Positions 4,656-50,000 of a stretch of 64,000 nucleotides of DNA are shown in pieces. The stretch covers positions 10,208,784 through 10,272,783 of the forward strand of contig CM121341.1 in the NCBI GenBank assembly GCA_051530055.1, written 5' to 3'. The notes under the pieces were generated by a model that worked only from the letters and a program-made list of their open reading frames with translations, was not told the origin of the DNA and searched no databases. Made by a program: the position numbers and the translations under genes. The stretch is from Neoechinorhynchus agilis (lineage: Eukaryota > Animalia > Acanthocephala). Each line of letters begins with the position of its first letter. Position 1 is the stretch's first letter.

Positions 4656-4677
4656 AAAACCACTTTTAATTTTCGGA

Positions 4678-5737: not shown

Positions 5738-6166
5738 ATGGCGCAAAACGGAAACAGTCAATCAATTGGTACTGATCAATTCTCCGAAATGGATCATGCT
5801 TATTTAGAAACTACCTATCAAGAAAATCCGATGCCTGATGAGGAAAGGATTAATGGAATCGCGCAGTTTCTTGGAAAACATCCCGGATTGGTTCGAATTT
5901 GGTATTATTTTAGAAGATGTCGTATGGTGGATCAGAGTACTTCACTGAGACAACTTTTGAATTACGTCATCAGTGCAAGAATTGCTCAACGATTGGAAGT
6001 TCATCGGCAATTCGTGCCTCAATTCTTTTTGAATTCGTATTTGCCTCCAAGACCGCCCGAGAATGGATCAATTGAACCCGGTGAGCTGTTTCGGCAGTAC
6101 GAGAGGACAATACAAATAGAAAGCGATTCCGAGAGCGACAGTTCAGAGGAGTACAAATTAGGATAG
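5738..6166 (+). CDS. Divergent homeodomain protein, cassette copy 1 (142 aa)
   Basis: Residues 8-67 align without gaps to the homeodomain pattern (F8, L16, E17, Y20, N23, P24, P26, I34, A35, L38, V45, W48, R52, R53). Strong aaaATGg start context and an acidic C-terminal tail. Confidence 0.8.
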   Translation: MAQNGNSQSIGTDQFSEMDHAYLETTYQENPMPDEERINGIAQFLGKHPGLVRIWYYFRRCRMVDQSTSLRQLLNYVISARIAQRLEVHRQFVPQFFLNSYLPPRPPENGSIEPGELFRQYERTIQIESDSESDSSEEYKLG

Positions 6167-6517
6167 TACATTATTTAAAAGAATATTTATTATTTCTGTA
6201 TATTGATCGCGATCCTCGGTAGATCCATGACAATATTAAATAAGGCACTTTGAAGATAAAAATACCGGATTCTCGGGGGTTCGGAAAATATTTAAATCTT
6301 TATTGTAGGTAAATTTAAACAACTTTTGATTCCAAAATAAAGTCTTGAAATACTAACCGAATTTGTAAACGTAAGGTCGCAGTCAAGTATTTGCTATGCG
6401 TTTGCATCCTAATTTATCTAGGAACATTTTTTAGAGGTCAAATATATGAAAAATATGTTTTTTTTAAGAAGTGTTATATTTGCAAAGAAATCTTTGCATA
6501 TTGGGTAATGTTTTCTA

Positions 6518-6800
6518 CGTGAAATCGTTCACACCACCGCTCTGGATCACTCAGCTGCCGTCCTGGTGTAATGGTCAAAAGGGGCGAATGCAGCGTTCCC
6601 TCGTTGCAGGAACGGACTTATGTTTTGTTGAAGGAATGCTCTTGATATCGGATCGCCAGTGATTCGTCTCAATCTCTTAAAGAATTGCTTGACTAGATTC
6701 TGCGCCGCGGTACTAAACGACCCGAATGTCTCGGCGCCAAAGGAAACTAAATAAAGATTTCGACTCAGGTCCGTGTATTTCGGCCATTCGTTGTCCTTGG
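6518..6800 (-). mobile_element. CRE-type 3' tail separating homeobox cassette copies 1 and 2
   Basis: Minus strand encodes KYTDLSRNLYLVSFGAETFG...RITGDP...QRGNAA-like sequence followed by the conserved terminal hairpin. Confidence 0.8.
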
Positions 6801-8974
6801 CAGCGATTGCTGATCCCCTGGTTTAGTAGCGGAGACCACGGCAACCATCCTGACCTGTGATCATGACAAAAACTCAAACCGAAGATCAGTAGAACTTTGT
6901 TTTGTAAAATGCATTTTTACACTAGGCAAACGCTTAAGGTACGACAAATGCGTTAATTTTAGACTTTGCGTTCCCAAAAAAAGTCCAAAAACGATAGCAT
7001 AATTTTCAGCAATAAGCGGTAATAAAAAGATCATTCTTTATACTTTATGATTACCTAAAACCCATGATTTTCTTTATTAAATGTCGAATAAATTGTATCA
7101 ATGTTACGCGGACGGCCACGTATTTAAAAATAATCAGTAACGCACTTTATCTCATCAATTGGCTAATATAATCACTCGTTACACGATAATCTTTTCTTCT
7201 AAAACATCTCGCATTACGCTGGAGTCTCCGTGCTGAACTTTATGGAACAATCGCATCAACGACAGAATACCGATTTCTCATTCTGGCGAGATTCGGCGAC
7301 AATGTTCAAGACGCATTAAGCTCAATTTTTTCATCATTTTCATCTCCGAAGGCGAAATCTTGAAACTCACTTTCAGTGCGGTGACAGAGCAACCAATTCA
7401 TTGATGGTTGTTATTTGCGGTTATTTAAATGCCACTGATGAATTCGTTCGATTCAATCTTCGGTATAAAAGAATAAATATTTAGTTTACCTTGGTGACTT
7501 AGGTGAAGGATCTAAAAAATCGAAGTTTTTAGGAACCACACGAAGCACAGTTTCACCAATTTTATGGTTAGGGAATCGTGTATCTTCGGAAAAAAAAGCG
7601 AAAAAGGCGGGTGGAAAAGTGTTGCTCTTATAAAGGAAAAGCGCAAGAAGCGTCCACGATTTGATCGACTTTTTGTGATGATTGTTTCCGCCGTCATGGT
7701 TATTCGAAATGGACCACTAAATGCTTCCAATGAAACCAGATTAAAAGCACAGAACGCATTCTTATATTAAGGAATAAAAGATAATTAAAGAAGAGGAATT
7801 TAGCTTAAAAATTGCTCAAAATTGCACTCTAAAAACAAAATCAAGCTAATCATTTAGGTGTAAATAACAAATTTCGAAAGCCTTTAACGAAATCTATCTG
7901 AATTAAAGGGCAATAACTGTAAGTGAAGCGATTTTAAGATGGATCGCTCAGAATCACTTTTATCGCGATTAGACCGGCACTGATTAAAACCTCAATCGCT
8001 TAGATTTAAAACGCATGTGATTAATTCCAGCAAAAATGCCGATATCTGCAGTTGGAAACTTCAGGCTTCAATGCAACATTTTATAATGTTGCATTCTAGT
8101 CCCCTTGAAAGGTGGAGATGTTCGAAATTCAATGATTTTAGGCCTAAAAATTGCACGATAAAAATTTCTGAAGTAATAACCTTGTAAAACAGAGCGTTTT
8201 CCATATTTCGTTTACTTTTAAAAGTAACGAAAATAATTTTCTAAAAATCATCAATTCAACGCTCAATATTGTCTAGCGATTTTTCCATTAAAATGGGGAC
8301 GTGAATGTTGATCCGTTTGTGGAAATTCGATTTCAAATCGATACATTGATATCTTTTATTTTCACAATAAATGAATTCTTAAATTCACACGCGCGATTGC
8401 GTAAAAATGAAACCAAGATTTTTTAATGACTAATTATCGATGGAGCCTTATTGATTTGATGGCATTGAACTAAGAAGTATTTATGTTTGACGATTATTTC
8501 CATCTCAAACCGAGACGCACTCAATTCTCACATGATTCGATCATTTCTACAGAAAATTAATTCTAAGAATGTTCAGCCCTCCTCAAGGTAGTTTTAACGT
8601 TTTCAAATCAGCAGAACTAAAGTTCGAAATCATCATTTTAATCCAAGTTCGATGACGAGACAAATCCGCTTAAGCAAAATGAGAGAACGCAAAAAATCTA
8701 TGGGAAGTATCGTTTTTTCGTAACGAAATGTTACAGAATTCCTTACGTTAAAAAACAAAAGATTCAATGATTTGTATTTTTTGTCTTAAACGCAAAAAAC
8801 ATTCGCGTCAATAAATATCGAGAATTGATATGTCAACAATAAATATGTTTCACTAACAAATAACCTAATATTTGTGACTGCTTGAGATGATGTTAAGCTG
8901 AACGGCGGTACCCTTGTTGAACCAAGAAACTAACGAAACGAAATACCAATTTCTATTATTCGCAAACCAAAAAT

Positions 8975-9391
8975 ATGGCGCAAAACGGAAACAGTCAATC
9001 ATTTGGTACTGATCAATTCTCCGATATGGATCATGCTTATTTAGAAACTACCTATCAAGAAAATCCGATGCCTGATGAGGAAAGGATTAATGGAATCGCG
9101 CAGTTTCTTGGAAAACATCCCGGATCGGTTCGAATTTGGTATTATTTTAGAAGATTTCGAATCGTGGATCCGAGTACTTCACTGAGACAACTTTTGAACT
9201 ACATTATCAGTGCAAGAATTGCTCAACGATTGGAAGTTCATCGGCAATTCGTGCCTCAATTCTTTTTGAATTCGTATTTGCCTCCAAGACCGCCCGAGAA
9301 TGGATCAATTGAACCCGGTGAGCTGTTTCGGCAATACGAGAGGACAATACAAATAGAAAGCGATTCCGAGAGCGACAGTTCAGAGGAGTAG
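8975..9391 (+). CDS. Divergent homeodomain protein, cassette copy 2 (138 aa)
   Basis: Intact ORF near-identical to copy 1, lying 3237 bp downstream in tandem. Confidence 0.8.
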   Translation: MAQNGNSQSFGTDQFSDMDHAYLETTYQENPMPDEERINGIAQFLGKHPGSVRIWYYFRRFRIVDPSTSLRQLLNYIISARIAQRLEVHRQFVPQFFLNSYLPPRPPENGSIEPGELFRQYERTIQIESDSESDSSEE

Positions 9392-9708
9392 CAAGTTAGG
9401 ATAGTACATTATTTAAAAGAATATTTATTATTTCTATATATTGATCGCGATCCTCGGTAGATCCATGACAATATTAAATAAGGCGCTTTGAAGGTAAAAA
9501 TACCGGATTCTCGGGGGTTCGGAAAATACTTAAATCTTTATTGTAGGTAAATTTAAACAAAGTTTGGCTCCAAAATGAAGTCTTGAAATACTAACCGAAT
9601 TTGTAACCGCAAGGTCACAGTTCTGAGGTCAAATATATGAAAAATATGTTTTTTTTAAGAAGTGCTATATTTACACAGAAAAGTTTGTATATTGGGTAAT
9701 GTTTTCTA

Positions 9709-11640
9709 CATGAAATCATTCACACCACCGCTCTGGATCACTCAGCTGCCGTCCTGGTGTAATGGTCAAAATAGGCGAATGCAGCGTTCCCTCGTTGCAG
9801 GAACGGACTTATGTTTTGTTGAAGGAATGCTCTTGATATCGGATCGCCAGTGATTCGTCTCAATCTCTTAAACAATTGCTTGACTAGATTCTGCTACGCA
9901 ATTCGACGCCAAAGGGAACAAAATAATGTTTTCGACTCAGGTCCCTGTATTTTGTCCTTTTGTGTTCCACAGCAGCTGCTGTTGCCCCTCCGGTTTAATG
10001 GTGGCGAAATCTATGTGTCCTAGAGAATGCATTTGCCTCCAATCGCCACGAGAACACTATGACATTGTCCGGTCTGCGACGACCATCGAGTCGGCAAAGA
10101 TTGCTCAGCTCTAGGATGTTGGGGCGCATTCCCAATATTCAGGGCACGACTAAGAGCATTGCGTTCACTTCGGCAATGAAGAGCGTGGTCTTGATCAGGA
10201 ACAGAGGATCGTGTGAATATAATTCATCAGCTCGTTCGCACAGCGCCGAAAGTTGCGGTTGAAGAATGGCAATTTCTGCTTCAACATTAGAAGCAAAAGT
10301 GCAACTTCCTAGAAGACTCAGAGTGCGCGACGGGATTAACTGCGGGTGAGAAGGCTATTGGGCCCAAAGGATCCCCTTGTTGAACTCTTCGTTCTGACCA
10401 CAAAACGTTTTTATTGAACAACAGGGATGTTGAAGCTCCATAGGCATTAACGAAATAGCGAAATGCTTCTGGTGTGTGATCTCTAACTACTTCGAGCAAA
10501 TCTGCTCGGTGAACTGTGTTGAATGCATTTTTGAAATCACATTTCAAGATCACGCACGGTTTTGAGTTTCTGGTGATGAACGTACGGAGTGAATGAACAA
10601 TCGCCTCTGCGCCACAAGGTGTACAGCACCCTAACTGAGTCGGGAGAAGCACCATCCCTACTTTTTCCGCGATCATTTTATTTAAATTTTTTGCAGTTAA
10701 GCGTCGCAGAGTTGTTCCAAGTGCAATGGGACAAATCCCACCTTCCTTTTTTGCGAGGGCACACAAAGATGTGCCGAAAAATAGCTCCGTTGCTTTCGGA
10801 ACCAACTCTTCCCGTGCTAATAGGTCGACTAGGATTGCCAATGCATCTCTAAGGGACTGGGCAGCGTCATCTACTGAAAAGGAAGTCATATCCTTTAGGT
10901 GTTGGGGCCACAGCCCATCAAGCCCGTGAGCTGATCCGTATTGCCATCTTCACTTTTGATGTTGATGATAAAACATAAGGGACCGTATCAAAGGAGGAGG
11001 ATTCCACGAAATATCGCCGACCGCCGTCACTGGGATGTTTGGAACGAAGAGTTCGTAAAGATTCTACGTTATCTTTGGCGAGACTGTCCATTGGTCATAA
11101 AAGACGAACTGCTCTTCTGACATATCTATCTGCAAGCTTCGGAGAAACGCGTCCAGCAAGCGACCGATTTGAGTTTCGGCAGTGGTCAGGCTCCTGGACA
11201 CGTTCCTTACGAAGCTCGCATGCTGTTGAAAGGCATTGAGTAAAATTTTTGTAAAAAGAACTTATTCGCTCTTATATTTTTGTGGCAAGAGATCCCTCAG
11301 AAATATCATCAGCGGAAAACGCTAGTCTACGGCACGCAAATAGATGCATCCACGACAACTCTGACCTATTTTCGGTGCAGTCTGTCATTAGAGTAGTGAA
11401 TCTCTTTGCTACTTGATATCGCGCGAACTTTGGGATTCTTTTTAGAACGTTCCTGGGCAGAACTCTCGCACAATATTCCCTACAAATGGAATCTCATTTT
11501 GTACTGGTGAAGTCGTGAAAGGCGTTTCATGCACATTATCAATAAATGTAGGAGATGAACCTGGACCGTCGCAGCGTGATTTGCGGGGCCCATGGATCCT
11601 AAGAATTCCTGTTTTTGCCAGGGAAAAAACCCATCACACA
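9709..11640 (-). mobile_element. Internally deleted, 5'-truncated CRE-type non-LTR retrotransposon
   Basis: Remnants of an N-terminal Zn-finger and VLKRIPK motif near 11400-11640. RT motifs PIALGTTLRRL, QLG...GAEAIVH, CDFKNAFN, VQQGDPLGP at 10287-10889. RLE/3' tail at 9709-10170. Multiple stops and deletions. Confidence 0.85.
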
Positions 11641-11646
11641 TAGTCA

Positions 11647-13140
11647 CGAATCGTAATTGTAAACGTTTTGATATTTCGTTTTATTATTTTGGTCGGTTCT
11701 CGAAACCCGAGTGAGATCGTTAAAGTCGAATATATAAATTGCGACTAATTTAAGCAGTCATTATCAATTCAAATTGTTTGAAGAGCAAAATACAAAGACA
11801 CTTTCTTAAATCGGGATATTTGTTGATTTAAAAGTCATCGATTTTGTCCATTATTCATTTTTTTGGTTTATGAAAAATGTTTATACAGAATTCCTAAATA
11901 AGACATTTTTTAACAATTGGTCGCGAATCGTAATTGAAACGTTTTGATATTTCGTTTTATTATTTTGGTCGATCCTTGAAACCCGAGTGAGATCGTTAAA
12001 GTCGAATATATAAATTGCGACTAATTTAATCAGTCGTTATCAATTTAAATTGTTTGAAGAGCAAAATACAAAGACACTTTCTTAAATCGGGATATTTATT
12101 GATTTAAAAGTTATCGATTTTGTCCATTATTCATTTTTTTGGTTTATGAAAAATGTTTATACAGAATTCTTAAAGAAGACATTTTTTAACAATTGGTTGC
12201 GAATCGTAATTGTAAACGTTTTGATATTTCGTTTTATTATTTTGGTCGATCCCTGAAACCCGAGTGAGATCGTTAAAGTCGAATATATAAATTGCGACTA
12301 ATTTAATCAGTCGTTATCAATTTAAGTTGTTTGAAGAGCAAAATACAAAGACACTTTCTTAAATCGGGATATTTATTGATTTAAAAGTTATCGATTTTGT
12401 CCATTATTCATTTTTTTGGTTTATGAAAAATGTTTATACAGAATTCTTAAATAAGACATTTTTTAACAATTGGTTGCGAATCGTAATTGAAACGTTTTGA
12501 TATTTCGTTTTATTATTTTGGTCGATCCTCGAAACCCGAGTGAGATCGTTAAAGTCGAATATATAAATTGCGACTAATTTAATCAGTCGTTATCAATTTA
12601 AGTTGTTTGAAGAGCAAAATACAAAGACACTTTCTTAAATCGGGATATTTATTGATTTAAAAGTCATCGATTTTGTCCATTATTCATTTTTTTGGTTTAT
12701 GAAAAATGTTTATACAGAATTCTTAAAGAAGACATTTTTTAACAATTGGTTGCGAATCGTAATTGAAACGTTTTGATATTTCGTTTTATTATTTTGGTCG
12801 GTTCTCGAAACCCGAGTGAGATCGTTAAAGTCGAATATATAAATTGCGACTAATTTAATCAGTCGTTATCAATTTAAATTGTTTGAAGAGCAAAATACAA
12901 AGACACTTTCTTAAATCGGGATATTTATTGATTTAAAAGTTATCGATTTTGTCGATTATTCATTTTTGTGGTTTATGAAAAATGTTTATACAGAATTCTT
13001 AAAGAAGACATTTTTAACAATTGGTTGCGAATCGTAATTGAAACGTTTCGATATTTCGTTTTATTATTTTGGTCGATCCTCGAAACCCGAGTGAGATCGT
13101 TAAGGACGAATATATAAATTTCGACTAATTTAAGCAGTCA
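11647..13140. repeat. Tandem satellite, ~276-bp unit, about 5.4 copies
   Basis: The anchor cgaatcgtaattg recurs at about 11647, 11924, 12200, 12477, 12753 and 13028; units are highly similar and have no variable spacers. Confidence 0.95.
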
Positions 13141-13379: not shown

Positions 13380-15295
13380 ATGGACCAATCGGCCAATGTT
13401 CGGAACCACGACGGCGATAAATCGGACGAAGATGGGAAAAAACGCGAACTTAGTGAAGATGATGACGTGAGTTCTAAAAAATGACCCACTTAATCACCAA
13501 ACAGTCCAGTTCAGGTCTGTCCGATATGTTTCGATCCATTTTCCACCGAAGGTCCACATCGCCTCGTCTCTTTGCGATGCGGCCATTTATATGGAAAAGA
13601 GTAAAGCTTTCGTTTTGTTTTAAAGACGACTAAGCCGATTCGGTTTAGTTGTGTGGCCAAATGGCTCCGGCATTCTGATCGATGTCCTCAATGCAACAAA
13701 ACTGCTCGTGCTCGAGATATGCGCCGTATTTATGGACGCCGAATAGTTCAAGTGGACACATCAGAAGTTGAAATTCTAAAGTCTAAACTCCGGACTGAGT
13801 CGACGATGCGTAGGGAGTTTGAGATGACCGTAGCTGAGATGAAAACAGAATTACTTTCTTTACAACGACAATTAGATGTTTACAAGTCAATAAACCTAAA
13901 CAAACCTAAGCTTTCATCTAAAATTGAGTGTAGACTTCTAAAATCAAAACGAATGGAACACTCGACCGGAGGAAGAGTCCTTACATTCTCATATGCACTT
14001 CAGTCTTTTATATTCTCTCGAAAATCACACTCTCCTCTTCTTAAAGGATATGGAATAGGTTTGCTTGATATGAACGCAGCAAACGGTCTTGTTTCAAATG
14101 ATCTACCTCGTCCACCCGTTCTTCATTCTGCGGATATTAAGGATATAAAATGCAACTATGACCAAAACCCAACACTCGTGTTGACCGCTGGTTTCGATGG
14201 TTTCGTGAAGGCCTATGATTTGAGAACTGGTCAATGTGATTTGGATTTGGAATTAGATCGACCCGTTTGGAGCTGCGAATTTGGATCAGGTGGAACACAC
14301 AGTGTTTATTGTGGCACAACGAATGGGGTTGTCTCAGAGTACAATAAAGTGGTCTACTCGATTTTAGGGCATTACTTTATATCATTGAAATCCATTAATA
14401 TCCTTCTTTTTCATATGAAGAGTAATACCGTTTTTTTTGTCAGCGTTATACTGTTCAGTCATGTGAACATCTAGATGATACTCGAAACTTCTTTTGAACT
14501 AAACGAATTCACTGTTAATATGTAAATTTTTTTGGTTTTCGTTGTATGCGATCTAAAATTCTTATTTAAAGTTATGTTTTTCTTGTAATTTTCCTCTACT
14601 AAAAGGGAATTTTTAATCGTTTAAACGCCTTTATTCCTTAGGGCTAAAAATTTATTTGTTCTTTAATATTTAAAATCGAACGAGTAGCCACTTAATATGA
14701 CCTAAGACAGACAAGCTCGAAAGTGGCCGATATCTATGCTGCTGAATATTCTTCAACACCGGTGAATTCAATTGTGCCCATAAGTTCAGAAGAGAAATGT
14801 AATCGAAAAGGGTTACTATTGTGCCAGTTAGACTGTACAACATTTGTAGACTCCACGGGCACTATGGATCGTTTGTTCGTTGGATTCCGTCCAATCTGTA
14901 CGTCAAAGTCAAAGTCGATGTTCCTGATCACATTTCGTCCAAGTAAAGGACAAACCGATCAAATCCATCACGTGTGTGAGCTTCCCGGAACAACACCGGA
15001 TCTAGTTACAACCGTGAATCGATTCTCTGGTTCACCTCTGTCGTCCGTTATGAGTAAAACAGCTCTGTTTGTTCTTAAAGGCGAGAAAGAGGTGAAGCCA
15101 ATGGTTGCATCGTATAGCCATAATGCCCGAGCGATTGCTATTCACGATGTTCTGAACGATGGGAAAGTCGTGAGTCTTATCAAAGGACCATGCGGAGTAA
15201 CTGATATTTGCTCAGCGACTCACGGAAATGTGCAACTCATGGCGTCCATATCACCCGACAGTGTAGATGTATTCGTTATCCAATGTGGGTCGTGA
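13380..15295 (+). CDS. RFWD3: RING finger and WD40 E3 ligase, RFWD3-like; 4 exons (13380-13466, 13515-13600, 13649-~14347, ~14711-15295)
   Basis: Spliced [49 protein letters not shown] matches the RFWD3 pattern, followed by a coiled coil and WD40 repeats (RPVWSCEF...VYCGTTNG). The first two introns are 48 nt GT-AG. Confidence 0.85.
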
Positions 15296-15945: not shown

Positions 15946-16103
15946 TTACACCTTATAAATCATTTCAGTCTTTAGTTGACGAATACGTCACCGGTATTTA
16001 ATTGAATAGTTCTTTTGGGAATGGAAATTTGCTTCACTTTCCAATTAGTCCCTTTTTGAACAAAAATATATTTTCTGGGCAAATAACAATATGGTGTTTA
16101 ATT

Positions 16104-17540
16104 TCACGCAAGTAGCTTTCTCTTTCTCGGTTTAGCCATTTCCTTTTCTGCGATTCGCATATTCGGAGTCTTATGAAGTAATCTTTCAGCTCGCTTTAAA
16201 ACCATCTTCTCATCCAAACTTCTCTTCCCACTCTTGCCGCCTTCCAGTTCTTTACGTTCCAAACGCGCCTTTCTCTTCTTCTTCGCCTTCCTCCTCATTG
16301 TCTTCTTCTCTTCTTTGCTTAGATCGTCTTTAGAGGCAATACTCTTTATTCGTCCAGCCACTTCCTCCGGTGCCAGCACTTTATCATCTAATCCCCCTTC
16401 TCCCGGCAATACCTGACCAATTTCTTCCATCACGACCGTTGGCAAACTCGATAAAATTTTGACTTCAGGAAGGGCCGGTGTTGGCGTAAACATTGAATGA
16501 GAAAGTGTGTCAAGTTTTTTGAACAGTTCTCGCATTGATTCCCGCACTTCCTCTCGTTTCGTCTCCTCTGGATCCTCTTCTTTTGTCCCCATGGATTTGG
16601 AATACGCATCTCCGTACACATCGGCCAAACCCTTTTGACTCTTCTCAAAATCTAACTTTATTGGTGGACGATACTCGGTCAAAGGTTTGACCTTCCTTTC
16701 GACATCATCAAAAGCTCGGTCTTTTATCCTTCTACGAACAATAGACTCAATCTTTGTAGTCAGTTCTGCAGTAATAGCAACCGGCACCTTGGTTTGCCTA
16801 TCAAACTCAAGATATTCTTCAATTGCACTATCCGATGGACGATCCTTCGCCTCAACCTCACCTCGCATCTGCCAAGGCTTCTCAACTTCCACCATTTCCT
16901 GTTCAATCGCAGCCACACGTTCAGCTGTCTTCATCTCTTCACGCTCATAATGAGTAGCATCTTTAAAGAAATCTTCAAATCGCAACTCATCAGCTCCCGC
17001 GTCTTCGGCATCGTATAACTCGTCCAAATTATCCTCATCGTTGTTCGTCATAAATGCCTCCATCTCTTTCTCATTGAACATTTCTTCTTTGACAGCGTCT
17101 TTGTTTTTCAGAATCGATTTTAAAGGAGTCTCCGATGATGTCGGATGTGCATTTCCATCCGACGATTGCAAATCTTTATGCCAACGAACTTTCCTTCGTT
17201 TCAGACGTAATGATGGAACCGACATTTCCGAAAAACAACGACGACCCATCAAAATGAGCTGACTGTACACTTGCTCAGGAACCATTGAGTCATTCACATA
17301 CAGTCCGTCCACTCCGAGCTGTTGAACGTACTTGAACCGCTTAGAGGATTCAATCGCAGCGTCAAAGAAGGATTTACAGTTCCAAAGTAGAACGTCAATC
17401 GCAGATGCTATCGGTTTAACGGTTACATTGTCTTTTAGAGACTCAGAAGGAAGATTTTCCATCTGAAATGAGATACTTTCCAATAAATCGAGAACCTTAA
17501 CGGATTTCTTAGATCTTAAATATCTTCTAGTAACTAACAA
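16104..17540 (-). CDS. MPP10: U3 snoRNP protein Mpp10 (5' end uncertain, probably with an upstream exon)
   Basis: KPWQMRGEV..KDRPSDSAIEEYLEFD, LTTKIESIVRRRIKDRAFDDV, LFKKLDTLSHSMFTP, LAPEEV and a Lys-rich C-terminus. Confidence 0.92.
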   Translation of the reverse strand: MLVTRRYLRSKKSVKVLDLLESISFQMENLPSESLKDNVTVKPIASAIDVLLWNCKSFFDAAIESSKRFKYVQQLGVDGLYVNDSMVPEQVYSQLILMGRRCFSEMSVPSLRLKRRKVRWHKDLQSSDGNAHPTSSETPLKSILKNKDAVKEEMFNEKEMEAFMTNNDEDNLDELYDAEDAGADELRFEDFFKDATHYEREEMKTAERVAAIEQEMVEVEKPWQMRGEVEAKDRPSDSAIEEYLEFDRQTKVPVAITAELTTKIESIVRRRIKDRAFDDVERKVKPLTEYRPPIKLDFEKSQKGLADVYGDAYSKSMGTKEEDPEETKREEVRESMRELFKKLDTLSHSMFTPTPALPEVKILSSLPTVVMEEIGQVLPGEGGLDDKVLAPEEVAGRIKSIASKDDLSKEEKKTMRRKAKKKRKARLERKELEGGKSGKRSLDEKMVLKRAERLLHKTPNMRIAEKEMAKPRKRKLLA

Positions 17541-34436: not shown

Positions 34437-34593
<157 letters not shown>

Positions 34594-37464: not shown

Positions 37465-37474
37465 GACCAATCAG
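37465..37474 (+). promoter_or_regulatory. CCAAT-box-like motif upstream of the palindromic gene (mirrored on the left arm)
   Basis: gaccaatcag about 100 bp upstream of the ATG, with tatatag at 37531-37537. Confidence 0.4.
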
Positions 37475-37573
37475 AGTGAGAGTCATTAACATGAGAATTT
37501 GCTACATATAGTTCATTTGCAGTCGCACGATATATAGCAAGTACATTGTGTTCGATTATTCGATTTTAGAAAG

Positions 37574-38553: not shown

Positions 38554-39536
38554 TTAAGTTGCTAATTTGTAAAGTCAAACAGATATTATCTGCGCTAACA
38601 TAAATGTATAAATGCTTGTAAAATAAAAATGCAAAACTTCATTCTTCACTTGTACTTGGTCATAGGGTCGTGAGAATAGCATTTGGAGGTTGAATATTAT
38701 TTTCATTTGCTAACTAAATTCGGTGCAATTTGAAAACATTGGGCACAATGAGGATTTTGATATACAACGACATTCAAAATTTAAAACATACTTAGAAAAA
38801 TAACGAAAATTGACATTGCAAGATCCCATAAACCAGAATTCGCTTCTACACGCGTATTGTATTTTAAAAATGGATAAAATATTAAAGCAATTAAAGTGAT
38901 TCATGCCTCAATTCATTAAAATTTTAGATTCACTTACCTTCGAATAATTCAAAATTGACACAAATATTATCTTATTGGGGATTGCGTTCGGGTTGTTAGA
39001 TATGTCGCTATTTGTGTCCATTGTCAATAACCGAGAGGGACCATTAAAGAATAATGTATATTTCGACTCATACAATTAGCCATTTATCAATTGCTTGAAA
39101 GTTTTTTAAGTGTGTCTGCTTAACCACACTTATTCTTGTTAATGATCCCTCTCGGATGTTGATAAACGATTCAATCAAGAACAAATATTATCAGTAGTAA
39201 ATTTTAAAAGGTTCGTACCAAGCATCAAAAAATGGAAGGTATAAAAAGCTCCTTTTACTCTAAAACATGATGAACAATGTGAAGATTACTATATTTTGCA
39301 ACGTAAGTAGTTTAAGCAACAACGCTTTAAATTGAGTGAAGACTTTATGTCTTTTAGCGAAGAAACAGGTAGGCGGATAAATACTTCTCTATTCGAAGAA
39401 AGAAAAACTTGTGATTCGTACGTATAACTTTGATGTTGTGAATAAACAAAATAGATAAATAATTACGGGAAAATGTCTCACATTGGTTAATTTCTCGACT
39501 AAGCACAAATAGAATTTTTCGAGCTGCAATTGTCAG

Positions 39537-40495
39537 TACGAAACGCTTACGCGGAGCTTAATCGATATCATTAGAGCGAGAGCGACGCTTTTCGATTATC
39601 GCTGTTGCTCGTAAACTGAGAAAGATGAATTATTTTTTCCTATGAATATGGAGCAGAATTATACTGTGAGTAAACATACTGCAAACCCAAAAATGTGGTC
39701 AGCAATGCATCAAACTCGATCGTAGGCTGATTGTTATCTTTTTAACAGACGGATTTGAGATTTGGAAAGGTTGCAAAAGACGGGATAACCGTAGTTGAGG
39801 GAGAGTAAAATAAAGCTGAAGTAAAATTTGTAGACATCGGGTTAAGGGATTCCTAAATGCCGGAAGCGTCTGAGGAGATCAATTTTAAAGGTGTTAAGCT
39901 TCAGGGAGAGAGCGATGGGCAAGTCCCATTTCGAATTTGACTAAAATTGGAGACCCAAAATTCATTGGGAGGTGACTCGTAGGATGCCAATTAGAAACTC
40001 GGGGTGGGATGTGGTACGAAACGCTTACGCGGAGCTTAATCGATATCATTAGAGCGAGAGCGACGCTTTTCGATTATCGCTGTTGCTCGTAAACTGAGAA
40101 AGATGAATTATTTTTTCCTATGAATATGGAGCAGAATTATACTGTGAGTAAACATACTGCAAACCCAAAAATGTGGTCAGCAATGCATCAAACTCGATCG
40201 TAGGCTGATTGTTATCTTTTTAACAGACGGATTTGAGATTTGGAAAGGTTGCAAAAGACGGGATAACCGTAGTTGAGGGAGAGTAAAATAAAGCTGAAGT
40301 AAAATTTGTAGACATCGGGTTAAGGGATTCCTAAATGCCGGAAGCGTCTGAGGAGATCAATTTTAAAGGTGTTAAGCTTCAGGGAGAGAGCGATGGGCAA
40401 GTCCCATTTCGAATTTGACTAAAATTGGAGACCCAAAATTCATTGGGAGGTGACTCGTAGGATGCCAATTAGAAACTCGGGGTGGGATGTGGGGT
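39537..40495. repeat. Tandem pair of a ~480-bp unit; third, inverted copy at ~34031-34655
   Basis: Unit runs tacgaaacgcttacg...ggggtgggatgtgg; about 300 bp of it is decayed LINE RT C-terminus on the minus strand (ILGLQF..KWD...LLRRFRHLGIP...YGYPVF). Confidence 0.88.
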
Positions 40496-41500
40496 AGCGG
40501 GAGAATGAGGGGATCATTTCGAACAATTTTGAGAAATTCAGATGGAGTTTGTCATTTCGTTGGAGGTTAAGAAAAGGGAGAGATGGGGTGGTGAATGGGT
40601 GATGGGGGTGATATTGTCGGCATATAAGAAAGGTTTAGAGTGATAGGAGGGAGGTTTGAGGTCGTTTAGGAAAATACTATAGGGAAGTGGTGATAGCACA
40701 GCAACTTGAGGTACGTCTTTGGTGAGAGATAGGCTGATAGAATAGGTGGAAAGGCAGTGGATGTATTGTTTGCGATTGTGAGGATAAGATTCGAGCCAGC
40801 GGATCGACCACAAGTTGAGACCATAATTGGAGCAGACCGGGAGAAGGAGTGAATGGTCTACTGAGTTGAAAGCTTTAGATAAATCAATGAATGAGACGGG
40901 TGACGTTGGAGGGATTATTGTCTAGGTTACGCAATAGCGTGTCATAAATGCAAAGTAGGGCATCAGTTGCAGAAAATTTGGGCGGGAAGCCGAATTTCAG
41001 GACCGTTAACATGTCGTTGAGTAGTGGAAGAAGGCGAGTTTTGAAACGTTTTTATATAACTTTAGGAAGAGCAAACATAATGGATATGGGGTGGAATTAT
41101 TCGGAGGAAATCGGATGTCCATTTTGCGAAAGAACAATAATAACTTTAGCAGTTTTACTGCATGGAGGTTGACGCCATATAAAAAGCTGTTGTTTATAAT
41201 GTGGGTAAAATATCGATGGGTTTGGGGATGATGTAGCGAAGAGCCCAGTTTGGGATTTCGGATTGAGAGGACGAATTTTTGGGTAATTTCTTGAGAGACT
41301 GTAATACTTCATATGACGAAACTAAGGGGAGTATCGGCGAGTTTACAAAAGTTTCAGGTGTGGGTGCGAAAGATTGTGCGGTGATTGATGTTGAGCAGTT
41401 ATTGTAAATTGAGTCAGGACCGAGGTTCTGATTAATGGAACTCTAGAACCTGTTTTAATTCAGTGGAGGTCAAATTAGGGAAGGGAGCCGGGTTGCGTAG
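40190..41500 (-). mobile_element. Decayed CR1/L2/jockey-like LINE reverse transcriptase
   Basis: Remnants of DLSKAF, VPQVAVLSP...FLND...LYADN and the downstream RT thumb. Confidence 0.75.
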
Positions 41501-42199
41501 ACAATAAGAGTCCCTGACGGCCCGCCACCATGTTGAATTGCCATCCGAACGAATTTTTGAGGAAAGTTTTTACGGGTGATAAGTATTTTGTTAGATTAAG
41601 CTATTTGTGACCGGGTGGAAAATATCAATCTTAAAAGTAAGTACAGCCGAGAATATAACTGCAAGTCAAGCTCGTTTAGAAATAGATATAGAGATAGCAT
41701 AAGACGTATTTTGAACTGGCATATTCTGTTACTTGCTGACGGCATGATATGTATGGTACTTGTCGGAATACTCGTAAATTCGGGAATGTTTCTTTGTTGT
41801 TTTAAATATTATTTCAGCGATTACAATGAAACGATTTGTGGAATTTTTGAACAGTGCTGCTGAAGCACTCAACAGGGAGGTAGCAATCAAATAAAATGAA
41901 CCGAGCAATGTCTTTAAGACGAGAGAATATGTGCAATATCTCCTACATCAGGCAAATTAAAGCCAATATTTTGTTTTAACGAGCTGATGCTTCTCGTTTG
42001 ATCGAAGAATAACCGCGTTGTTGTTTAAACTATCATGCGAACAATAATTTGTTATTAGTAGTGGTTTAGCTTCACCGATTCCGGAAACTTTCACATCTTT
42101 AGTATTTGATTAAGAACGTACCAGTAAATAAATTACAAATAGCAAAGCATTAAGGGCAAACTTTTATTTGGATTAACCCACTTTAACCCGTTTGCATCT

Positions 42200-43500
42200 T
42201 TTCTTGATAAAGTCAACTACCCCTTCGTAACAAACCTTGCTTTGTTCCGCAATGATCGCTCGCACGAATTTTTCGTTATTATCAATCTTGATATCAGTCG
42301 CTGACGAATTGAAATCGGTTGTGGCCTTCGCGTACGTTTGTGTGGAGCATGGTGGATATTAGTCGTATCGAATAGAGCTAAGCTACTATTGATGGACGCC
42401 AATAGCGAATCGAAGTGGTTAGTTAACCGCTTTTCGAGATTTTGTAAGTCGACCATTTACAAAATTTTGGCGTTAAATTGCTCCATCATTCGATCCAAAT
42501 TGTCTCGTTGGACATCCGAAGATCTTGTAACAGCTATACTTGTTGATACGAACGGTATCGGCGTCTGCACGTGATGAGATTGATTCGAAGGAGTCGTATT
42601 TATGCACTTTTCCCATGCCGTGCCAACGTTGAATGCAGCTACTTGCTTCTGTTAAGCCCAGAAAAAGTACTTCTTAAATTCACCATATGATTTGGCGAAC
42701 GCGTAGTGACCGATTTGACTGCAATTAGCACATCTCCGGGGACTTTTCGGACAAATGTCTGCGGTATGCTCCAATGCATAGAATGGGCACCGGATTTGCT
42801 TATTAGGCCATTTCTGCGTCCAGTGGCCCCATTGTTGACATTTGTTACATCGCGGATAATGAAAATCATCGAAATGATATGTATTGCCTGGAAAAAACAA
42901 CTTTTACTGGTGAGATCATCTCTGATGTGGGCAGAGAAGCCTTTACTACGGCCCGTGGAATCGGGGCGTTCGTTTTGCTTGACTTCAGAAAAAAATAATA
43001 TTTGAAAGTTGAAATTGTTTTCGAACTCCTTACGATCAGCTGTATCGACATGAGGAGACAATCTTGAGACAATGAACGTCGAATCATGGTTTCCGATCGA
43101 TAGGGAGATTCCTGTCATGTCGCAGTTCTTGACGACGAACTCCTTAAACTGCTCAAGATGATTTTTTGTAGACAAAGTGTATTTTAAGCTTTCCGCCGCA
43201 GTATGAAATCGACCGAACTCGCTCACGATCGTCTTTGATTGTTTTTAGCCATGGCGATAGCACTCGTGAGTGCAAGCTTTCTCGTGGCAGAATGGGGTTT
43301 GAATCTATGAAGGCCACATGCGGCCATCTTTTGGTAGGATGATCGATGTAGCAGCAATCGCCATTTGAATTGGGTTGTATCTTGTCCGATGAGACAGGAG
43401 TCGGATCGGAACAATAAGGTTGAGAAATGGGGGCCGTTTGCCACCCTCCGCTACAACGCAAGGTTGCAAAAACATTTTTACTTTATGAAAAAGCAACAAT
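42200..43500 (-). mobile_element. Decayed non-LTR ORF1 (gag-like, CCHC cluster)
   Basis: PRCNKCQQWGH...RCP...HTADIC...RCANCSQIGHYA, typical of I/jockey/R1-group ORF1. Confidence 0.7.
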
Positions 43501-43519
43501 ATATTAACCATGGCATCGT

Positions 43520-43710
43520 TATGGGTCACTGAGCTACCGTCCTGGTGTAATAGTTCAAAGGATGCAGCGTTCCCTAGTTGAAGGGACAGACTTATGTTTT
43601 GAAGGAGTAAATTTTCCAGTCCTCGGATCGTCTCAATCTCTTGGACAATTGATTGACTGGGTTCCGTGCAGCGGCACCAAACGACCCGAGAGTCTCGACG
43701 TCAAAGGAAA
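43520..43710 (-). mobile_element. CRE-type 3' tail fragment
   Basis: Minus strand VSFDVETLGSFGAAARNPVNQLSKRLRR plus part of the terminal hairpin. Confidence 0.7.
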
Positions 43711-43893
43711 CGAAATAATCACGAACATTACCATTTACACGAAGCAAAACAACGCGAAAAAACGAAGTTACAGGACATACGAAAAGCAACAAACCGCGAC
43801 AATTAAATAACTTCATTCCCAGCTTATGATTCTTTCAGGTATAAAAACAACATTAAGAGAGTTCAGGATCATAAGAATTACTAACATGTTCAA

Positions 43894-44660
43894 ATGATGG
43901 CCAGCGGGAAGTGCACAATGTCCGAGGCATTACGAAAGATATTGCATGAGATTAGAAAGGTCACATATAATCGAAGGCGAATTCTTTTAGTTGCTGTTTC
44001 CAAACTGCAGCCCATAGAAAAGATTCTTGAAGCTTATAAGTGTGGTATTCGTGATTTTGGTGAGAATTATGTTGAAGAGCTTATTTCGAAGTCCGATGAT
44101 CCAGTTTTGAGGGAAAAATGCCCAGATATTAGATGGCATTTTATCGGTCACCTTCAGAGCAAAAAAACATCGAAGCTTTTAAAGAGCGTGACGAGCCTTT
44201 ATATGATTCACAGCGTAGATTCGGTTCGATTGGCTGATAAGATAAATTCCTCTGCACTTCATGTGGCTTGATTTTTTTGAAAGAAAACTCGTAATAGAGA
44301 TCTTGCCAAAAGAAAATGAACGTATTGGTTCAAGTAAACTCAAGCGGAGAAGAGAGTAAAAGCGGTTTGGATGATGATGATCAAATCTTGACATTGTGCT
44401 CACACATTGTAGAGAAATGTTCAAATTTGATTTTTAAAGGTCTAATGACCATTGCATCACCGAACGAAGGCAAAGTGGTGGACGAATTCAAGTATATGAA
44501 TAGTTTGCGTCTTAAGGTATCTAATCACATCAATGTTCAAGTAGAAGAAATCGAATTGAGCATGGGAATGTCCAGTGATTATCTAGAGGCAGTAAAGGAA
44601 GGTAGCACTATTCTCAGAATTGGATCAAGTATTTTTGGTCCACGAAACAAGAATGAGTAG
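43894..44660 (+). CDS. PLPBP: Pyridoxal-phosphate homeostasis protein (YggS/PROSC family); intron 44263-44297
   Basis: LVAVSKLQP, FGENYVEEL, WHFIGHLQSKK, VLVQVNSSGEESKSG, GLMTI, ELSMGMSSDY, LRIGSSIFG; a 35-nt GT-AG phase-0 intron joins the frames. Confidence 0.95.
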
Positions 44661-44929
44661 CGCCCATGTATCTGAAAACTCAAAGAATTTTGAAATCTCC
44701 ATTGCGGGTGAATTTAACAATTGTATTCGTTACGTCATCGAAGACCGATGGGCACGAAAGAGCACGTCGAATTGCACGTTTAGAAGTGTCAGAAAACAAT
44801 GACGTTCATAAGTGCAACTTTACTCCGCATTGGACTTTTTTACATTCCCCGTCTACAAATAGCTCAATCGTGCAAAATACTTGTCGCCCGCAGGACTCTT
44901 TTGGTCTACTAAACTAGGATCCCTTCACA

Positions 44930-45760
44930 AACTTGTTCTCTTCTGAACTGAAACATGTCCTAAACTCCACAAATCAAAACCAATGCCCAAACACGAGTCA
45001 TAACCATTGCTCCATCTCAGATTCCACACAAACTTTCACTCCAAACAATTGACAATTCTGTCGACTCTTTAATACTCCCCTTAGTCTCGTCATATGAAGT
45101 TCTCCAACATCTTAAAAAATTACGTCGAAATTCGCCCCCTCAATCGGAAATCTAGAAGTTTACTATTAACCGCATAATTCCCGAGCTCATCGATTCTCTT
45201 ACCCTCATTATAAATCACTGCCTGAAAACTGCCAAAGTGATCCTTCTTTCGAAAAATAGACATTCGATTTAAACCGAATCATTCCATTTAATATCCACTC
45301 AGCCCCAATTTTTAAACATTCATCGAAAAATGTTTTAAACTCGTCTTCGTTCACTTCTCAACAAAAAATCATCGCCCCTCTGCAACCGATGGCCTACTTT
45401 TCATTTAAGACGTGCTTTTAAGAGACCACGACAATGATCCCTTTAACATCATCCGTGTCATTTAAATGGTTTTTTCGAACGCATTTGACTCCCTATGCCA
45501 TTCACTACTCCAAGCTTATTCTGATTTCGACTTAAACGCATTGCAAATCCACTGGCTGGCCTCTTAAAATTGCCAACAATACATTAACTGCCGTTCTACC
45601 CCCTCTATCAGCCTATCCCTCACCAAAGGCGTACTTCAAGTTGTTGTGTTGTCATCACTTCTCTTTAATATTTTTCTAAACAACCTTAAACCTCTGTCCT
45701 CTCACTCTAAACTTTAGTTATACGCCGACGATATCACCCTCATCACTCAATCAGCACCCC
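44930..45760 (+). mobile_element. Decayed CR1/L2/jockey-like LINE RT, same family as 40190-41500
   Basis: LTKGVLQVVVLSSLLFNIFLN...LYADD; shared tactccccttagt.tcgtcatatgaag block. Confidence 0.7.
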
Positions 45761-47099
45761 ACATCTGCAAAATTAGACGAGACGTTGAAAGTTTCTCTCG
45801 AGAAAATTTTAAATCGTAAGCAAGCCGTAAAATAGCTCAATCCGTTCTTGGCGAGAATTACACTTTAGATAAAGATTTTGTGGAGGCGCTTAATCTTTGG
45901 TGTGGAAATTTTGGCAGCGAGCAGGTACCCATCAATGGTTGCAAATAATCAGCTTGGAATTCGCTCCTGGTGGCGAGAATTCATAACTCTTCAATTTCAC
46001 GTTCTCGTGACCTGGTTAACCGAACTCGATTGTCGGCAGTCTTTACAAGAGAATCGGGTGCTTGGCTCAACGCTCTCCCAATCGCCTCTGTTGGTACCTT
46101 TGTCTCTGACGAGACAGTAAGGTTTGCAGTATCCCTGAGACTTGGGGTACCGATGCGCACATTCCATCGCTGCGGTTCTGACCTCAGATAAAGTGACCAA
46201 CAGAGCACTGTATAAGAGAGCCGGAGTCCAACCGCCCAGTGAATATTTGCGCCGCAGACGACTGCAGTTCCGGGCAATATAATTCGGTCCGAGGCATCTT
46301 GCCCACAGGTCGTGCAACATTCTTTTCTGGAAGCCAACGACATTGTATCGTAAAGGCAAAGGGAACTGTCGTACATACGACGTAGGAAAGTACCGTTGCA
46401 TACAATACAATACAATCGCTGCCGTTGCGATGCGACCGTGGAACCATCGGGACGCAATGGTCTCGTCTGTCGGCAATCAGGCACGAAGTACTCACGATAC
46501 GCCGAAGTGAACGCAATGCTCTTAGTCGTGCCCTGAATATTGGGAATGCGGCCGACATTTTAGAACCGAGCAATCTTTGCCGACTCGATGGTCGTAGACC
46601 GGACGGTGTCACAATATTTCCGGGGGAGGTTAGGGTGCACATTCCATCGCTGCCGTAGCGGAGCGACCGTGAGATCGTCGGGACGCCATGATCTCGTCTG
46701 TTGGCAAGCAATTGTCTAAGAGATTGAGACGAATCACAGGCGATCCGAGATCAGGAGCATTCAACGATGGAACGCTGCATCCGTCCTTTCGACTATTACA
46801 CCAAGACGGCAACTTAGTAATCCAGAGCGGTGGTGTGAATGATTTCATGTAAAAAACATTACCCAATATACAAAGTTTTCTGTGTAAATATAGCACTTCT
46901 TAAAAAAACATATTTTTCATATATTTGACCTCATGACTATGACCGTACGGTTACAAATACGGGACGGGTGGTGTGAATGATTTAATGAAATTTATAAATT
47001 TTTTAAAGGAAAACTTTACCCAGTAAACAACGTGTTCGCTAATTTTACAAACAATTTTTTAATCTGACCTCATCGTTAGTTTCTAATAAGCTCACAGTC

Positions 47100-50000
47100 T
47101 TGAGATACACCCTCACACCCAGCATGTCCGTGTGGAACCATCAGGACGCCATGGTCTCGTCTGTCGGCAATCAGGCGAAAGAACTAACGATACGCCGAAG
47201 TGAACGCAATGCTCTTAGTCGTGCCCTGAATATTGGGAATGCGCCCCAACATCCTAGAGCTGAGCAATCTTTGCCGACTCGATGGTCGTCGCAGACCGGA
47301 CAATGTCATAGTGTTCTCGTGGCGATTGGAGGCTAATGCATTCTCTGGGACACATAGATTTCGCCACCATTAAACCGGAGGGGCAACAGCAGCTGCTGTG
47401 GAACACAAAAGGACAAAATACAGGGACCTGAGTCGAAAACATTATTTTGTTCCCTTTGGCGTCGAATCGCGGCGCAGAATCTAGTCAAGCAATTGTTTAA
47501 GAGATTGAGACGAATCACTGGCGATCCGATATCAAGAGCATTCCTTCAACAAAACATAAGTCCGTTCCTGCAACGAGGGAACGCTGCATTCGCCTATTTT
47601 GACCATTACACCAGGACGGCAGCTGAGTGATCCAGAGCGGTGGTGTGAATGATTTCATGTAAAAAACATTACCCAATATACAAACTTTTCTGTGTAAATA
47701 TAGCACTTCTTAAAAAAAACATATTTTTCATATATTTGACCTCAGAACTGTGACCTTGCGGTTACAAATTCGGTTAGTATTTCAAGACTTTATTTTGGAA
47801 TCAAAAGTTGTTTAAATTTACCTACAATAAAGGTTTCAATATTTTCCGAACCCCCGAGAATCCGGATTTTATACCCCAAAAACGCCATATTTAATATTAT
47901 CATTGATCTACCGAGGATCGCGATCAATATACAGAAATAATAAATATTCTTTTAAGTAATGTACTATCCTAATTTGCTACTCCTCTGAACTGTCGCTCTC
48001 GGAATCGCTTTCTATTTGTATTGTCCTCTCGTATTGCCGAAACAGCTCACCGGGTTCAATTGATCCATTCTCGGGCGGTCTTGGAGGCAAATACGAATTC
48101 AAAAAGAATTGAGGCACGAATTGCCGATGAACTTCCAATCGTTGAGCAATTCTTGCACTGATGACGTAATTCAAAAGTTGTCTTAGTGAAGTACTCGGAT
48201 CCACGATTCGAAATCTTCTAAAATAATACCAAATTCGAACCGATCCGGGATGTTTTCCAAGAAACTGCGCGATTCCATTAATCCTTTCCTCATCAGGCAT
48301 CGGATTTTCTTGATAGGTAGTTTCTAAATAAGCCTGATCAATATCGGAGAATTGATCAGTACCAAATGATTGACTGTTTCCGTTTTGCGCCATATTTTTG
48401 GTTTGCGAATAATAGAAATTGGTATTTCGTTTCGTTAGTTTCTTGGTTCAACAAGGGTACCGCCGTTCAGCTTAACATCGTCTCAAGCAGTCACAAATAT
48501 TAGGTTATTTGTTAGTGAAACATATTTATTGTTGACATATCAATTCTCGATATTTATTGACGCGAATGTTTTTTGCGTTTAAGACAAAAAATACAAATCA
48601 TTGAATCTTTTGTTTTTTAACGTAAGGAATTCTGTAACATTTCGTTACGAAAAAACGATACTTCCCATAGATTTTTTGCGTTCTCTCATTTTGCTTAAGC
48701 GGATTTATCTCGTCATCGAACTTGGATTAAAATGATGATTTCGAACTTTAGTTCTGCTGATTTGAAAACGTTAAAACTAAAAAATCGATGGATCGAAGTC
48801 AGCAAACTGATACTGGGCCTTGAATAGGGCTGAACATTCTTGGAATTAATTTTCTGTAGAAATGATCGAATCATGTGAGAATTGAGTGCGTCTCGGTTTG
48901 AGATGGAAATAATCGTCAAACATAAATACTTCTTAGTTTAATGTCATCAAATAAATAATGCTCCATCGATAATTAACCATTAAAAAAATCTTGCTTACAT
49001 TTTCACGCAATCGCGCGTGTGAATTTAAGAATTCATTTATTGTGAAAATAAAAGATATCAATGTATCGATTTGAAATCGAATTTCCACAAACGGATCAAC
49101 ATTCACGTCCCCATTTTAATGGAAAAATCGCTAGACAATATTGAGCGTTGAATTGATGATTTTTAGAAAATTATTTTCGTTACTTTTAAAAGTAAACGAA
49201 ATATGGAAAACGCTCTGTTTTACAAGGTTATTACTTCAGAAATTTTTATCGTGCAATTTTTAGGCCTAAAATCATTGAATTTCGAACATCTCCACCTTTC
49301 AAGGGGACTAGAATGCAACATTATAAAATGTTGCATTGAAGCCTGAAGTTTCCAACTGCAGATATCGGCATTTTTGCTGGAATTAATCACATGCGTTTTA
49401 AATCTAAGCGATTGAGGTTGTAATCAGTGCCGGTCTAATCGCGATAAAAGTGATTCTGAGCGATCCATCTTAAAATCGCTTCACTTACAGTTATTGCCCT
49501 TTAATTCAGATAGATTTCGTTAAAGGCTTTCGAAATTTGTTATTTACACCTGAATGATTAGCTTGATTTTGTTTTTAGAGTGCAATTTTGAGCAGTTGTT
49601 CTACATCCCTTCGATAATTTTTGAGCTAAATTCCTCTTCTTTAATTATCTTTTATTCTTTAATTTAAGAATGCGTTCTGTGCTTTTAATCTGGTTTCATT
49701 GGAAGCATTTAGTGGTCCATTTCGAATAACAATGACGGCGGAAACAATCATCAAAAAAAGTCGATCAAATCGTGGACGCTTCTTGCGCTTTTCCTTTATA
49801 AGGGCAACACTTTTCTACTCGCCTTTTTCGCTTTTTTTCCGAAGATACACGATTCCCTAACCATAAAATTGGTGAAACTGTGCTTCGTGTGGTTCCTAAA
49901 AACTTCGATTTTTTAGATCCTTCACCTAAGTCACCAAGGTAAACAAAATATTTATTCTTTTATACCGAAGATTGAATCGAACGAATTCATCAGTGGCATT

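Follow-up and report, generated by a model that had tools for sequence, protein, structure and literature searches.

The 64-kb window examined here comprises 64,000 nucleotides (nt) of the acanthocephalan Neoechinorhynchus agilis (assembly GCA_051530055.1, contig CM121341.1, positions 10,208,784 to 10,272,783 of the forward strand). It harbors four near-identical homeobox genes, all of them flanked by 3' tails of a non-long-terminal-repeat (non-LTR) retrotransposon. An earlier examination of the letters alone (hereafter, the sequence-only reading) took this arrangement for a composite retro-mobile or recombinogenic unit by which the element spreads the gene. Having followed the genes through the assembly, we consider it probable that they belong to a host gene family amplified by local duplication at the DNA level, and that they are not the cargo of a retrotransposon. 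Coordinates below are window positions unless a position in Mb or a scaffold coordinate is given.

The homeobox genes, their family and their product

The genes and their immediate flanks are as follows.

5738-6166, plus strand: homeobox copy 1, 142 amino acids (aa); an open, intronless open reading frame (ORF) with a Pfam match
8975-9391, plus strand: homeobox copy 2, 138 aa; homeodomain at about residues 8-67
30283-30699, plus strand: homeobox copy 3, 138 aa; left palindrome arm
47977-48393, minus strand: homeobox copy 4, 138 aa; right palindrome arm
7219-8974, plus strand: upstream region of copy 2, 1.76 kb; found beside these genes alone
9392-9710, plus strand: gene 3' flank of copy 2; ATTAAA about 85 nt past the stop codon (~9473)

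All four ORFs are intronless and open from end to end, as the sequence-only reading had stated, and their pairwise identities are 95-98%. The stop codon of copy 1 has indeed lost one base, which extends the protein by four residues (YKLG). The indels reported between the flanks of the copies were likewise observed, at 8588/8589, ~9621 and 7010-7219. The figure of “four intact copies” is correct for the window but not for the genome: a six-frame search of the whole assembly, one of the checks that had been proposed, located 11 intact copies, five of which are at least 95% identical. The 11 copies are confined to less than 1 Mb of a single scaffold (10.12-11.10 Mb). The fifth near-identical copy, which together with those of the window makes up what we call the window clade, lies 87 kb upstream of them. 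The six further copies are ~80% identical; three are located at 10.34-10.37 Mb and three at 11.01-11.10 Mb. Decayed copies with stop codons occur on the same scaffold and on a second one. A tree of the copies resolves into four well-supported lineages that meet in an unresolved polytomy.

Two distant paralogues, P0014 and P0038, are found on another scaffold; P0014 is 34% identical to copy 2. Beyond these, 1.84 billion representative proteins were searched exhaustively with a profile; this search, which was not extended to the genomes of other acanthocephalans, returned full-length relatives or relatives with the C-terminal motif described below from N. agilis only, and all remaining matches were to the homeodomain region alone. 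The best match from outside N. agilis was P0005, a 1666-aa predicted protein on a 5333-bp ENA metagenome contig; it comprises 14 degenerate homeodomain repeats, many of which also lack the Asn at homeodomain position 51. The genome holds ~90 loci that match the homeodomain, about 15 of which belong to this family. Ten family loci exceed the PF00046 cut-off genome-wide: nine of the 11 intact copies and the decayed one at 11.10 Mb. In the public annotation the members are labelled “hypothetical protein”, and the supplements of the genome paper (PMC12690905) have no homeobox entry.

The identification of the product as a homeodomain protein, made originally from residue spacing, was borne out by a hidden Markov model search and by structure prediction. 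All four window ORFs pass the PF00046 cut-off (26.4-27.9 bits against 22.9), with residues 15-62 aligned to profile positions 7-54. Modelled with AlphaFold2 from the 11 family members, the protein shows the three helices of a homeodomain, including the helix-turn-helix (residues 17-29, 35-45 and 49-60), at predicted local distance difference test scores of 73-84; the C-terminal half is poorly modelled. When this model was compared with the PDB using Foldseek, the top 50 matches were homeodomains without exception, with template-modelling scores by target of up to 0.93 and, for the best matches, root-mean-square deviations of 0.6-2 Å across ~50 residues. The best E value was 5e-3, and none of the 50 reached 1e-3. 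A profile search of PDB sequences also returned homeodomains only; these matches were weak and of mixed classes (POU, LIM, PRD-like), and the DUX4 homeodomain was one of them. The residues of the homeodomain core (L16, F20, W48, F49 and R53 in homeodomain numbering; L23, Y27, W55, Y56 and R60 in the protein) are invariant in all 11 copies.

The DNA-contacting positions are another matter. Asn51 is near-universal in homeodomains, where it and Arg5 of a basic N-terminal arm make the main base contacts. In the present family, position 51 (residue 58) is Phe or Leu, and in P0014 and P0038 it is His or Arg. The N-terminal arm reads SFGTDQFS, with no basic residue and one invariant Asp. Because both Asn51 and the basic arm are missing, established homeodomain structure predicts that base-specific binding is altered or lost. 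Most likely, then, the protein would bind DNA in a changed mode or act on other factors, as their cofactor or competitor. Outside the homeodomain, a YLPPRP...GELFRQYE motif and an acidic, Ser-rich tail are conserved near the C terminus; P0014 and P0038 carry the motif (as YLPxRP...GELFxQYE) and an acidic tail as well. All 11 copies agree at 75 residues, many of which lie in the C-terminal part. A query of the ESM Atlas with the C-terminal 75 residues returned nothing usable.

The upstream sequence is shared much as the sequence-only reading described it, i.e., in copies 2-4 and, in shortened form, in copy 1. Region 7219-8974 is found again, with 94-95% identity, beside copies 3 and 4 as well as the fifth copy, and copy 1 retains ~0.5 kb of it. 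A transposable-element (TE) origin of the 1.76-kb region was ruled out by its genomic occurrence, which is restricted to these genes. Its proximal 165 bp (8810-8974) are 85-90% identical in three of the four lineages and ~70-87% in the trio at 10.34-10.37 Mb; sequence further upstream is ~79% identical or not alignable between lineages. The proximal segment is likely to be a promoter or 5' leader, to judge from this conservation.

In copy 1 alone, the retained upstream sequence is split by a 274-bp, A-tailed insert (5012-5285) that resembles a short interspersed nuclear element (SINE). At least 40 other copies of it are 99-100% identical over ~225-274 bp, and first-look candidates number more than 1000. 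Because of these near-identical copies, the insert is evidently a very young retroposon, and it is probably still active.

Retrotransposon tails and the duplication of the genes

The elements and larger structures around the genes are listed next. TE-A, TE-B and TE-C denote individual fragments of the non-LTR family; RT is reverse transcriptase, and GST is glutathione S-transferase.

6520-7010, minus strand: chimeric junction tail between copies 1 and 2, with B/A diagnostic sites
9711-11642, minus strand: TE-B of copy 2; includes the 3' end, an endonuclease-like region and an RT ORF (10287-10889)
27914-28219, minus strand: TE-A of copy 3; 5'-truncated fragment of ~300 bp
31018-32353, minus strand: TE-B of copy 3; ends beside an LTR-retroelement gag-pol ORF
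50456-50761, plus strand: TE-A of copy 4; upstream tail
45765-47658, plus strand: TE-B of copy 4; rearranged and accompanied by additional partial 3'-flank copies
4697-4930, minus strand: TE-C, a third tail; internally deleted, forms the left border of a satellite-embedded block
26885-52269, no strand: imperfect palindrome with arms 26885-37329 and 37402-52269 and a 72-nt spacer; contains copies 3 and 4
51153-51812, plus strand: GST gene; intact and divergent from copy 4, a pairing also present at the fifth copy
27344-27463, minus strand: GST C-terminal remnant beside copy 3

The 3' ends of one non-LTR family flank the window genes on both sides in antisense orientation, just as the sequence-only reading had noticed. 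The upstream tails begin at 6520, 27914 and 50761, and the downstream tails at 9711, 31018 and 47658. The element’s RT ORF matches RVT_1 with 43 bits, and its closest and sole solved relatives are R2 proteins (E 4.5e-5). Downstream of the RT, an RPDG...WD.TC.DT motif was spotted by eye and marks a putative restriction-like endonuclease. Pfam and PDB searches with the putative endonuclease and the N-terminal zinc-finger-like ORFs yielded no match. Copies of the family are 80-85% alike (natural copies, not a consensus, were compared), with more than 1000 first-look candidates in the assembly; the matches that were scored, over 100 in number, are spread across three scaffolds. The 3' terminus, closed by no more than a short A-rich run, is constant, and the sequence beyond it is unrelated from site to site. 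Judged by these comparisons, the family is old and dispersed and, because the flanks past the terminus are unrelated, not site-specific; insertion confined to spliced-leader genes, as in the CRE elements with which the sequence-only reading grouped the family, is not what we found. Two breakpoints that element copies appeared to share were pursued and set aside: the one at ~2112 proved to be a deletion in L040, the copy that served as the ruler, and the one at 2712-2723 was left unexplained.

Two fragments of this family recur at fixed positions relative to the genes. TE-A, a 300-bp tail, precedes copies 3, 4 and 5 by ~2 kb. TE-B has its 3' end 319 nt past the stop codon, and every one of the five window-clade copies shows the same junction between gene 3' flank and downstream tail, with the adjoining 70 nt identical throughout. 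TE-B is also found, in decayed form, beside the paralogue g11007566. We take TE-B to be a single old insertion that was copied along with the gene, because its junction does not vary among the five copies and because TE-B itself is shared with g11007566. For five of the seven copies outside the window, the downstream flank is known for 1.5 kb; within 1.5 kb of the genes, two of the four lineages have no tail at all. At copy 2, TE-B has two internal deletions and is 5'-truncated where it meets a satellite. At copy 3, its truncated end abuts an LTR-retroelement ORF encoding gag, protease and RT (32607-33896, minus strand, 429 aa), which is missing from the other palindrome arm.

TE-A and TE-B can be told apart at 79 diagnostic sites, and these allow the junction between tandem genes to be read. 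The tail at 6520-7010 is of type A, then of type B at 10 sites, and then again of type A from approximately column 190; at the remaining 68 sites, it has 63 A, 3 B and 2 states that are neither. Behind the fifth copy, the tail that precedes a partial additional unit likewise mixes B and A states, with switch points that differ. Moreover, the spacing from TE-A to TE-B (3104-3191 bp) compares with a tandem period of 3191-3237 bp. The chimeric tails and the agreement of spacing with period therefore point to unequal crossing-over between same-orientation repeats, an event that produced or reshaped tandem units at least twice. Of the proposed “retro-mobile or recombinogenic” unit, the recombinogenic part fits the chimeric junction tails; the retro-mobile part is not supported, and the unit has no element-type ends of its own. 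The ~3.2-kb cassette itself proved real for the tandem pair of copies 1 and 2 and for one junction at the fifth copy, but not for the other copies. No tandem array exceeds two full units: copies 1-2 form such a pair, and the fifth copy has one unit and a partial one.

Most of the remaining copies are found in larger duplicated segments. The palindrome arms, which hold copies 3 and 4, are 99.5-100% identical for ~2 kb on either side of the center and 97% identical further out (96.9% over the gene units), and they differ by kilobase indels; the palindrome is either a true inverted duplication or in part an artefact of assembly. Copies 4 and 5 have an additional 1.4 kb of common flank (99.6% identical) that includes the intact GST gene, and among the copies that share the GST-plus-flank segment, its identity is 98-99.6%. 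In the other lineages, the paralogues at C1:10338036, 10353666 and 10369200 are spaced by ~15.6 kb, and an inverted pair, C1:11032257 (minus) and 11096154 (plus), lies 64 kb apart with 98.9% identity over 3 kb. A decayed homeobox copy is located 4.7 kb from one member of that pair. Given the palindrome, the GST segments, the 15.6-kb trio and the inverted pair, local DNA-level duplication is thus the general mode by which the copies spread. The homology between copies extends beyond the tails into the shared GST flank, which is not the pattern of a cassette transduced by a retrotransposon. With all intact copies inside 1 Mb and two lineages devoid of tails within 1.5 kb, the claim that the element carries and spreads the gene is not supported. 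GST sequences that accompany homeobox copies were also recorded at 25797-26465 (minus) in the window and, outside it, at 4695-5351 (minus) in L020 and 5497-6042 (plus) in L026; a GST of 33% identity lies 2 kb upstream of the 11.096-Mb homeobox paralogue.

These observations can be accommodated in the following scheme. The ancestral gene of the window clade lay between two same-orientation fragments, TE-A ~2 kb upstream and TE-B tail-to-tail with the gene. Unequal crossing-over of TE-A with TE-B, ~3.1-3.2 kb apart, created a 3.2-kb tandem repeat on at least two occasions, and the chimeric B/A tails are what remains at the tandem junctions. Larger segments were duplicated too, in direct and inverted orientation, two with the GST gene and a third with the GST remnant.

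Alternatives, expression and selection

Four points weigh against a functional host family amplified by DNA-level duplication. One block of the window has element ends at both of its borders, which simple unequal crossing-over fails to explain. The assembly is a hybrid from pooled worms, and some of the five copies at ≥95% identity could be uncollapsed haplotypes. Expression is only suggested, by contigs from four sequencing runs whose kind (RNA) is a guess. Finally, among the three lineages other than the window clade, the ratio of nonsynonymous to synonymous divergence (dN/dS) is 0.6-0.7 and is not significant.

4656-11642, no strand: two-gene block of 6987 bp with copies 1 and 2; in-phase interruption of a 276/277-bp satellite

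The satellite occupies 4098-4655 and 11643-13140; its copies are 85-98% alike, and it was not found at any other locus that was fetched. Around the block, 2 bp of the target or monomer are lost, and there is no duplication. Read in the sense of the element, the block starts within the coding region, with ~4 extra nt and the appearance of a 5' truncation, and it ends ~23 nt past the complete 3' end of TE-C; its borders are those of an ordinary 5'-truncated element insertion. A random breakpoint would fall so near a tail end in ~1% of cases, by a rough estimate, and template switching is known for R2-type RTs. A chimeric RNA that arose by antisense read-through or template switch may be imagined to have been copied into the satellite by target-primed reverse transcription, which would make the block a composite retro-mobile unit, at least in this one place. 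If that were true, an R2-like long interspersed nuclear element (LINE) would have transported a pair of intact homeobox genes, upstream regions included, to a new location. We regard this as unlikely. The assembly contains no source locus with the junction of TE-C to the upstream region, and the same borders would result if a 5'-truncated element had inserted into the satellite earlier and a 5.2-kb piece of the gene array had been added later through repair or recombination. Such a later capture fits the irregular joints at 4930/4935 and 10174/10175, the latter of which skips from position 2075 to 2723 of L042. No antisense read-through is seen in the contigs treated below, which have gaps at 9466-9649 and 7626-8545 (weak evidence), and all other copies spread by DNA-level duplication.

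An artefact of assembly, in which near-identical copies and the palindrome would partly represent uncollapsed haplotypes or chimeric long reads, is likewise unlikely. The 46.2-Mb assembly was produced with MaSuRCA from Nanopore and Illumina reads of ~50 pooled worms, Hi-C scaffolded and gap-closed (PMC12690905). The near-identity at the center of the palindrome and its 72-nt spacer are what such an error might leave, and one 732-nt contig from the four runs joins I10/E17 with I77, a combination found in none of the five assembled copies; further alleles or copies therefore exist. However, copies 1 and 2 are separated by 3.2 kb, a distance that a single read can reach, and the copies differ in large indels, the private SINE-like insert, the switch points of their tails and their flanks. 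The palindrome arms have diverged by kilobase indels and, over the genes, to 96.9%, and lineages at ~80% identity cannot be alleles.

The contigs just mentioned derive from four runs of one 2025 study, in which roughly half the sequence words drawn from 8700-9700 are present; the contigs give no strand, ends or level. Seventy-four single-worm mRNA libraries are reported in the genome paper (PMC12690905), and the four runs may be among them. Their contigs span 8593-9465, which includes the entire ORF of copy 2, and 6522-7625; none falls on 7626-8545, 9466-9649 or 6154-6521. This pattern suggests transcripts rather than genomic DNA, and the end of coverage near the ATTAAA also fits. The gap at 9466-9649, between the gene and its tail, proves little regarding the earlier notion that the antisense orientation shields the element’s transcript from truncation, for which we found no evidence.

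Are the ORFs decaying relics, open only because they are young, and devoid of function? The window-clade copies differ by only 2-5%, which makes their open frames uninformative, the dN/dS among the other three lineages (0.6-0.7) is not significant, and Asn51 has been lost. Nevertheless, we judge the proposition to be quite improbable. All 11 copies keep 138-142 codons across a synonymous divergence (dS) of ~0.3, and true relics with stop codons exist alongside them. Comparisons of the window clade with each of the other lineages give a dS of ~0.25-0.33 and a dN/dS of 0.36-0.40 (Fisher p 0.0005-0.002, i.e., ~0.001). The 75 invariant residues include the C-terminal motif, which is common to paralogues at 34% identity; the proximal upstream region is conserved; and the ORF is covered by contigs. 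We take the family to be functional but fast-evolving.

It is highly improbable that a site-specific element targets the sequence just 3' of the homeobox gene in the manner of R2 at 28S ribosomal DNA (rDNA): the RT is nearest to R2 proteins and a tail stands at the same position in every window-clade copy, but the tail lineage and the 70 nt beside it are identical in five of five copies (one insertion, subsequently copied), the family’s flanks elsewhere are unrelated, and in two lineages the 1.5 kb next to the gene is free of tails.

Comparison with known systems, and other features of the window

The host family that we favor is a species-restricted member of a familiar kind, i.e., locally amplified, divergent homeobox genes, here with an atypical recognition helix. 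DUX4 in the human D4Z4 macrosatellite is comparable in that an intronless, lineage-restricted homeobox ORF resides in a unit of ~3.2-3.3 kb with repeat-derived sequence. The likeness has limits: N. agilis has at most two tandem units instead of tens and one homeodomain instead of two, the borders of its unit lie in two LINE fragments with crossover chimeras, and most of its copies come from larger direct or inverted segmental duplications. The mammalian Rhox, Obox and PRD-like clusters are similarly fast-evolving, locally duplicated, species-restricted and under moderate constraint; unlike them, the present family has replaced Asn51 with Phe or Leu, lacks a basic arm, possesses a private C-terminal motif and has only weak, mixed-class matches in the PDB. 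HOPX, which does not bind DNA, offers another parallel as a small protein of homeodomain fold without key DNA-contact residues. The present protein has an extra conserved C-terminal part of 70 residues, and the parallel with HOPX is drawn from its build, not from any demonstrated sequence relationship.

With respect to mechanism, non-allelic homologous recombination between TEs (Alu-Alu, LINE-LINE) is an established route to duplication. The tandem units match it in having a segment bracketed by two same-orientation fragments, a chimeric element at the junction and a period equal to the fragment spacing; we see no essential difference, and the locus is a clean, small-scale acanthocephalan example. 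Chimeras made by L1 transduction or template switching resemble only the satellite-embedded block, with a 3' terminus at one end and a 5'-truncated element at the other. Contrasting with them, the cargo here would be ~5 kb long, antisense and made up of two promoter-bearing genes, and no source locus, tail-defined unit ends or dispersed copies were found. The element itself would share with the CRE clade (CRE1/2, SLACS, CZAR) and with R2 an RT followed by a putative restriction-like endonuclease motif; it differs from them in occupying many unrelated sites, not spliced-leader genes or rDNA, and in its short A-rich end.

None of these findings overturns current understanding. Their value lies in a clean and small instance in which recombination between LINE fragments has amplified a gene, and in a natural set of homeodomains without Asn51, which is material for asking what such proteins do. 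They also counsel caution, for transposon tails around a gene need not mean that the gene is carried by a transposon. Acanthocephalan genomes are very small and gene-poor and have lost many regulators (PMC12690905, PMC12256650).

The remainder of the window contains long-exon host genes.

1619-3246: SMAD (MH1 + MH2)
13653-14474: RFWD3-like WD40 protein
16104-17540: Mpp10
20089-20976: SRP54-type GTPase

Rfam and tRNA scans of the 64-kb window yielded no match. Three tandem repeats were observed: five copies of a 223-bp period at 58175-59366 (98-99% identical), two copies of a 231-bp period at 27464-27916 (100%) and two copies of a 478-bp period at 39536-40313 (100%).

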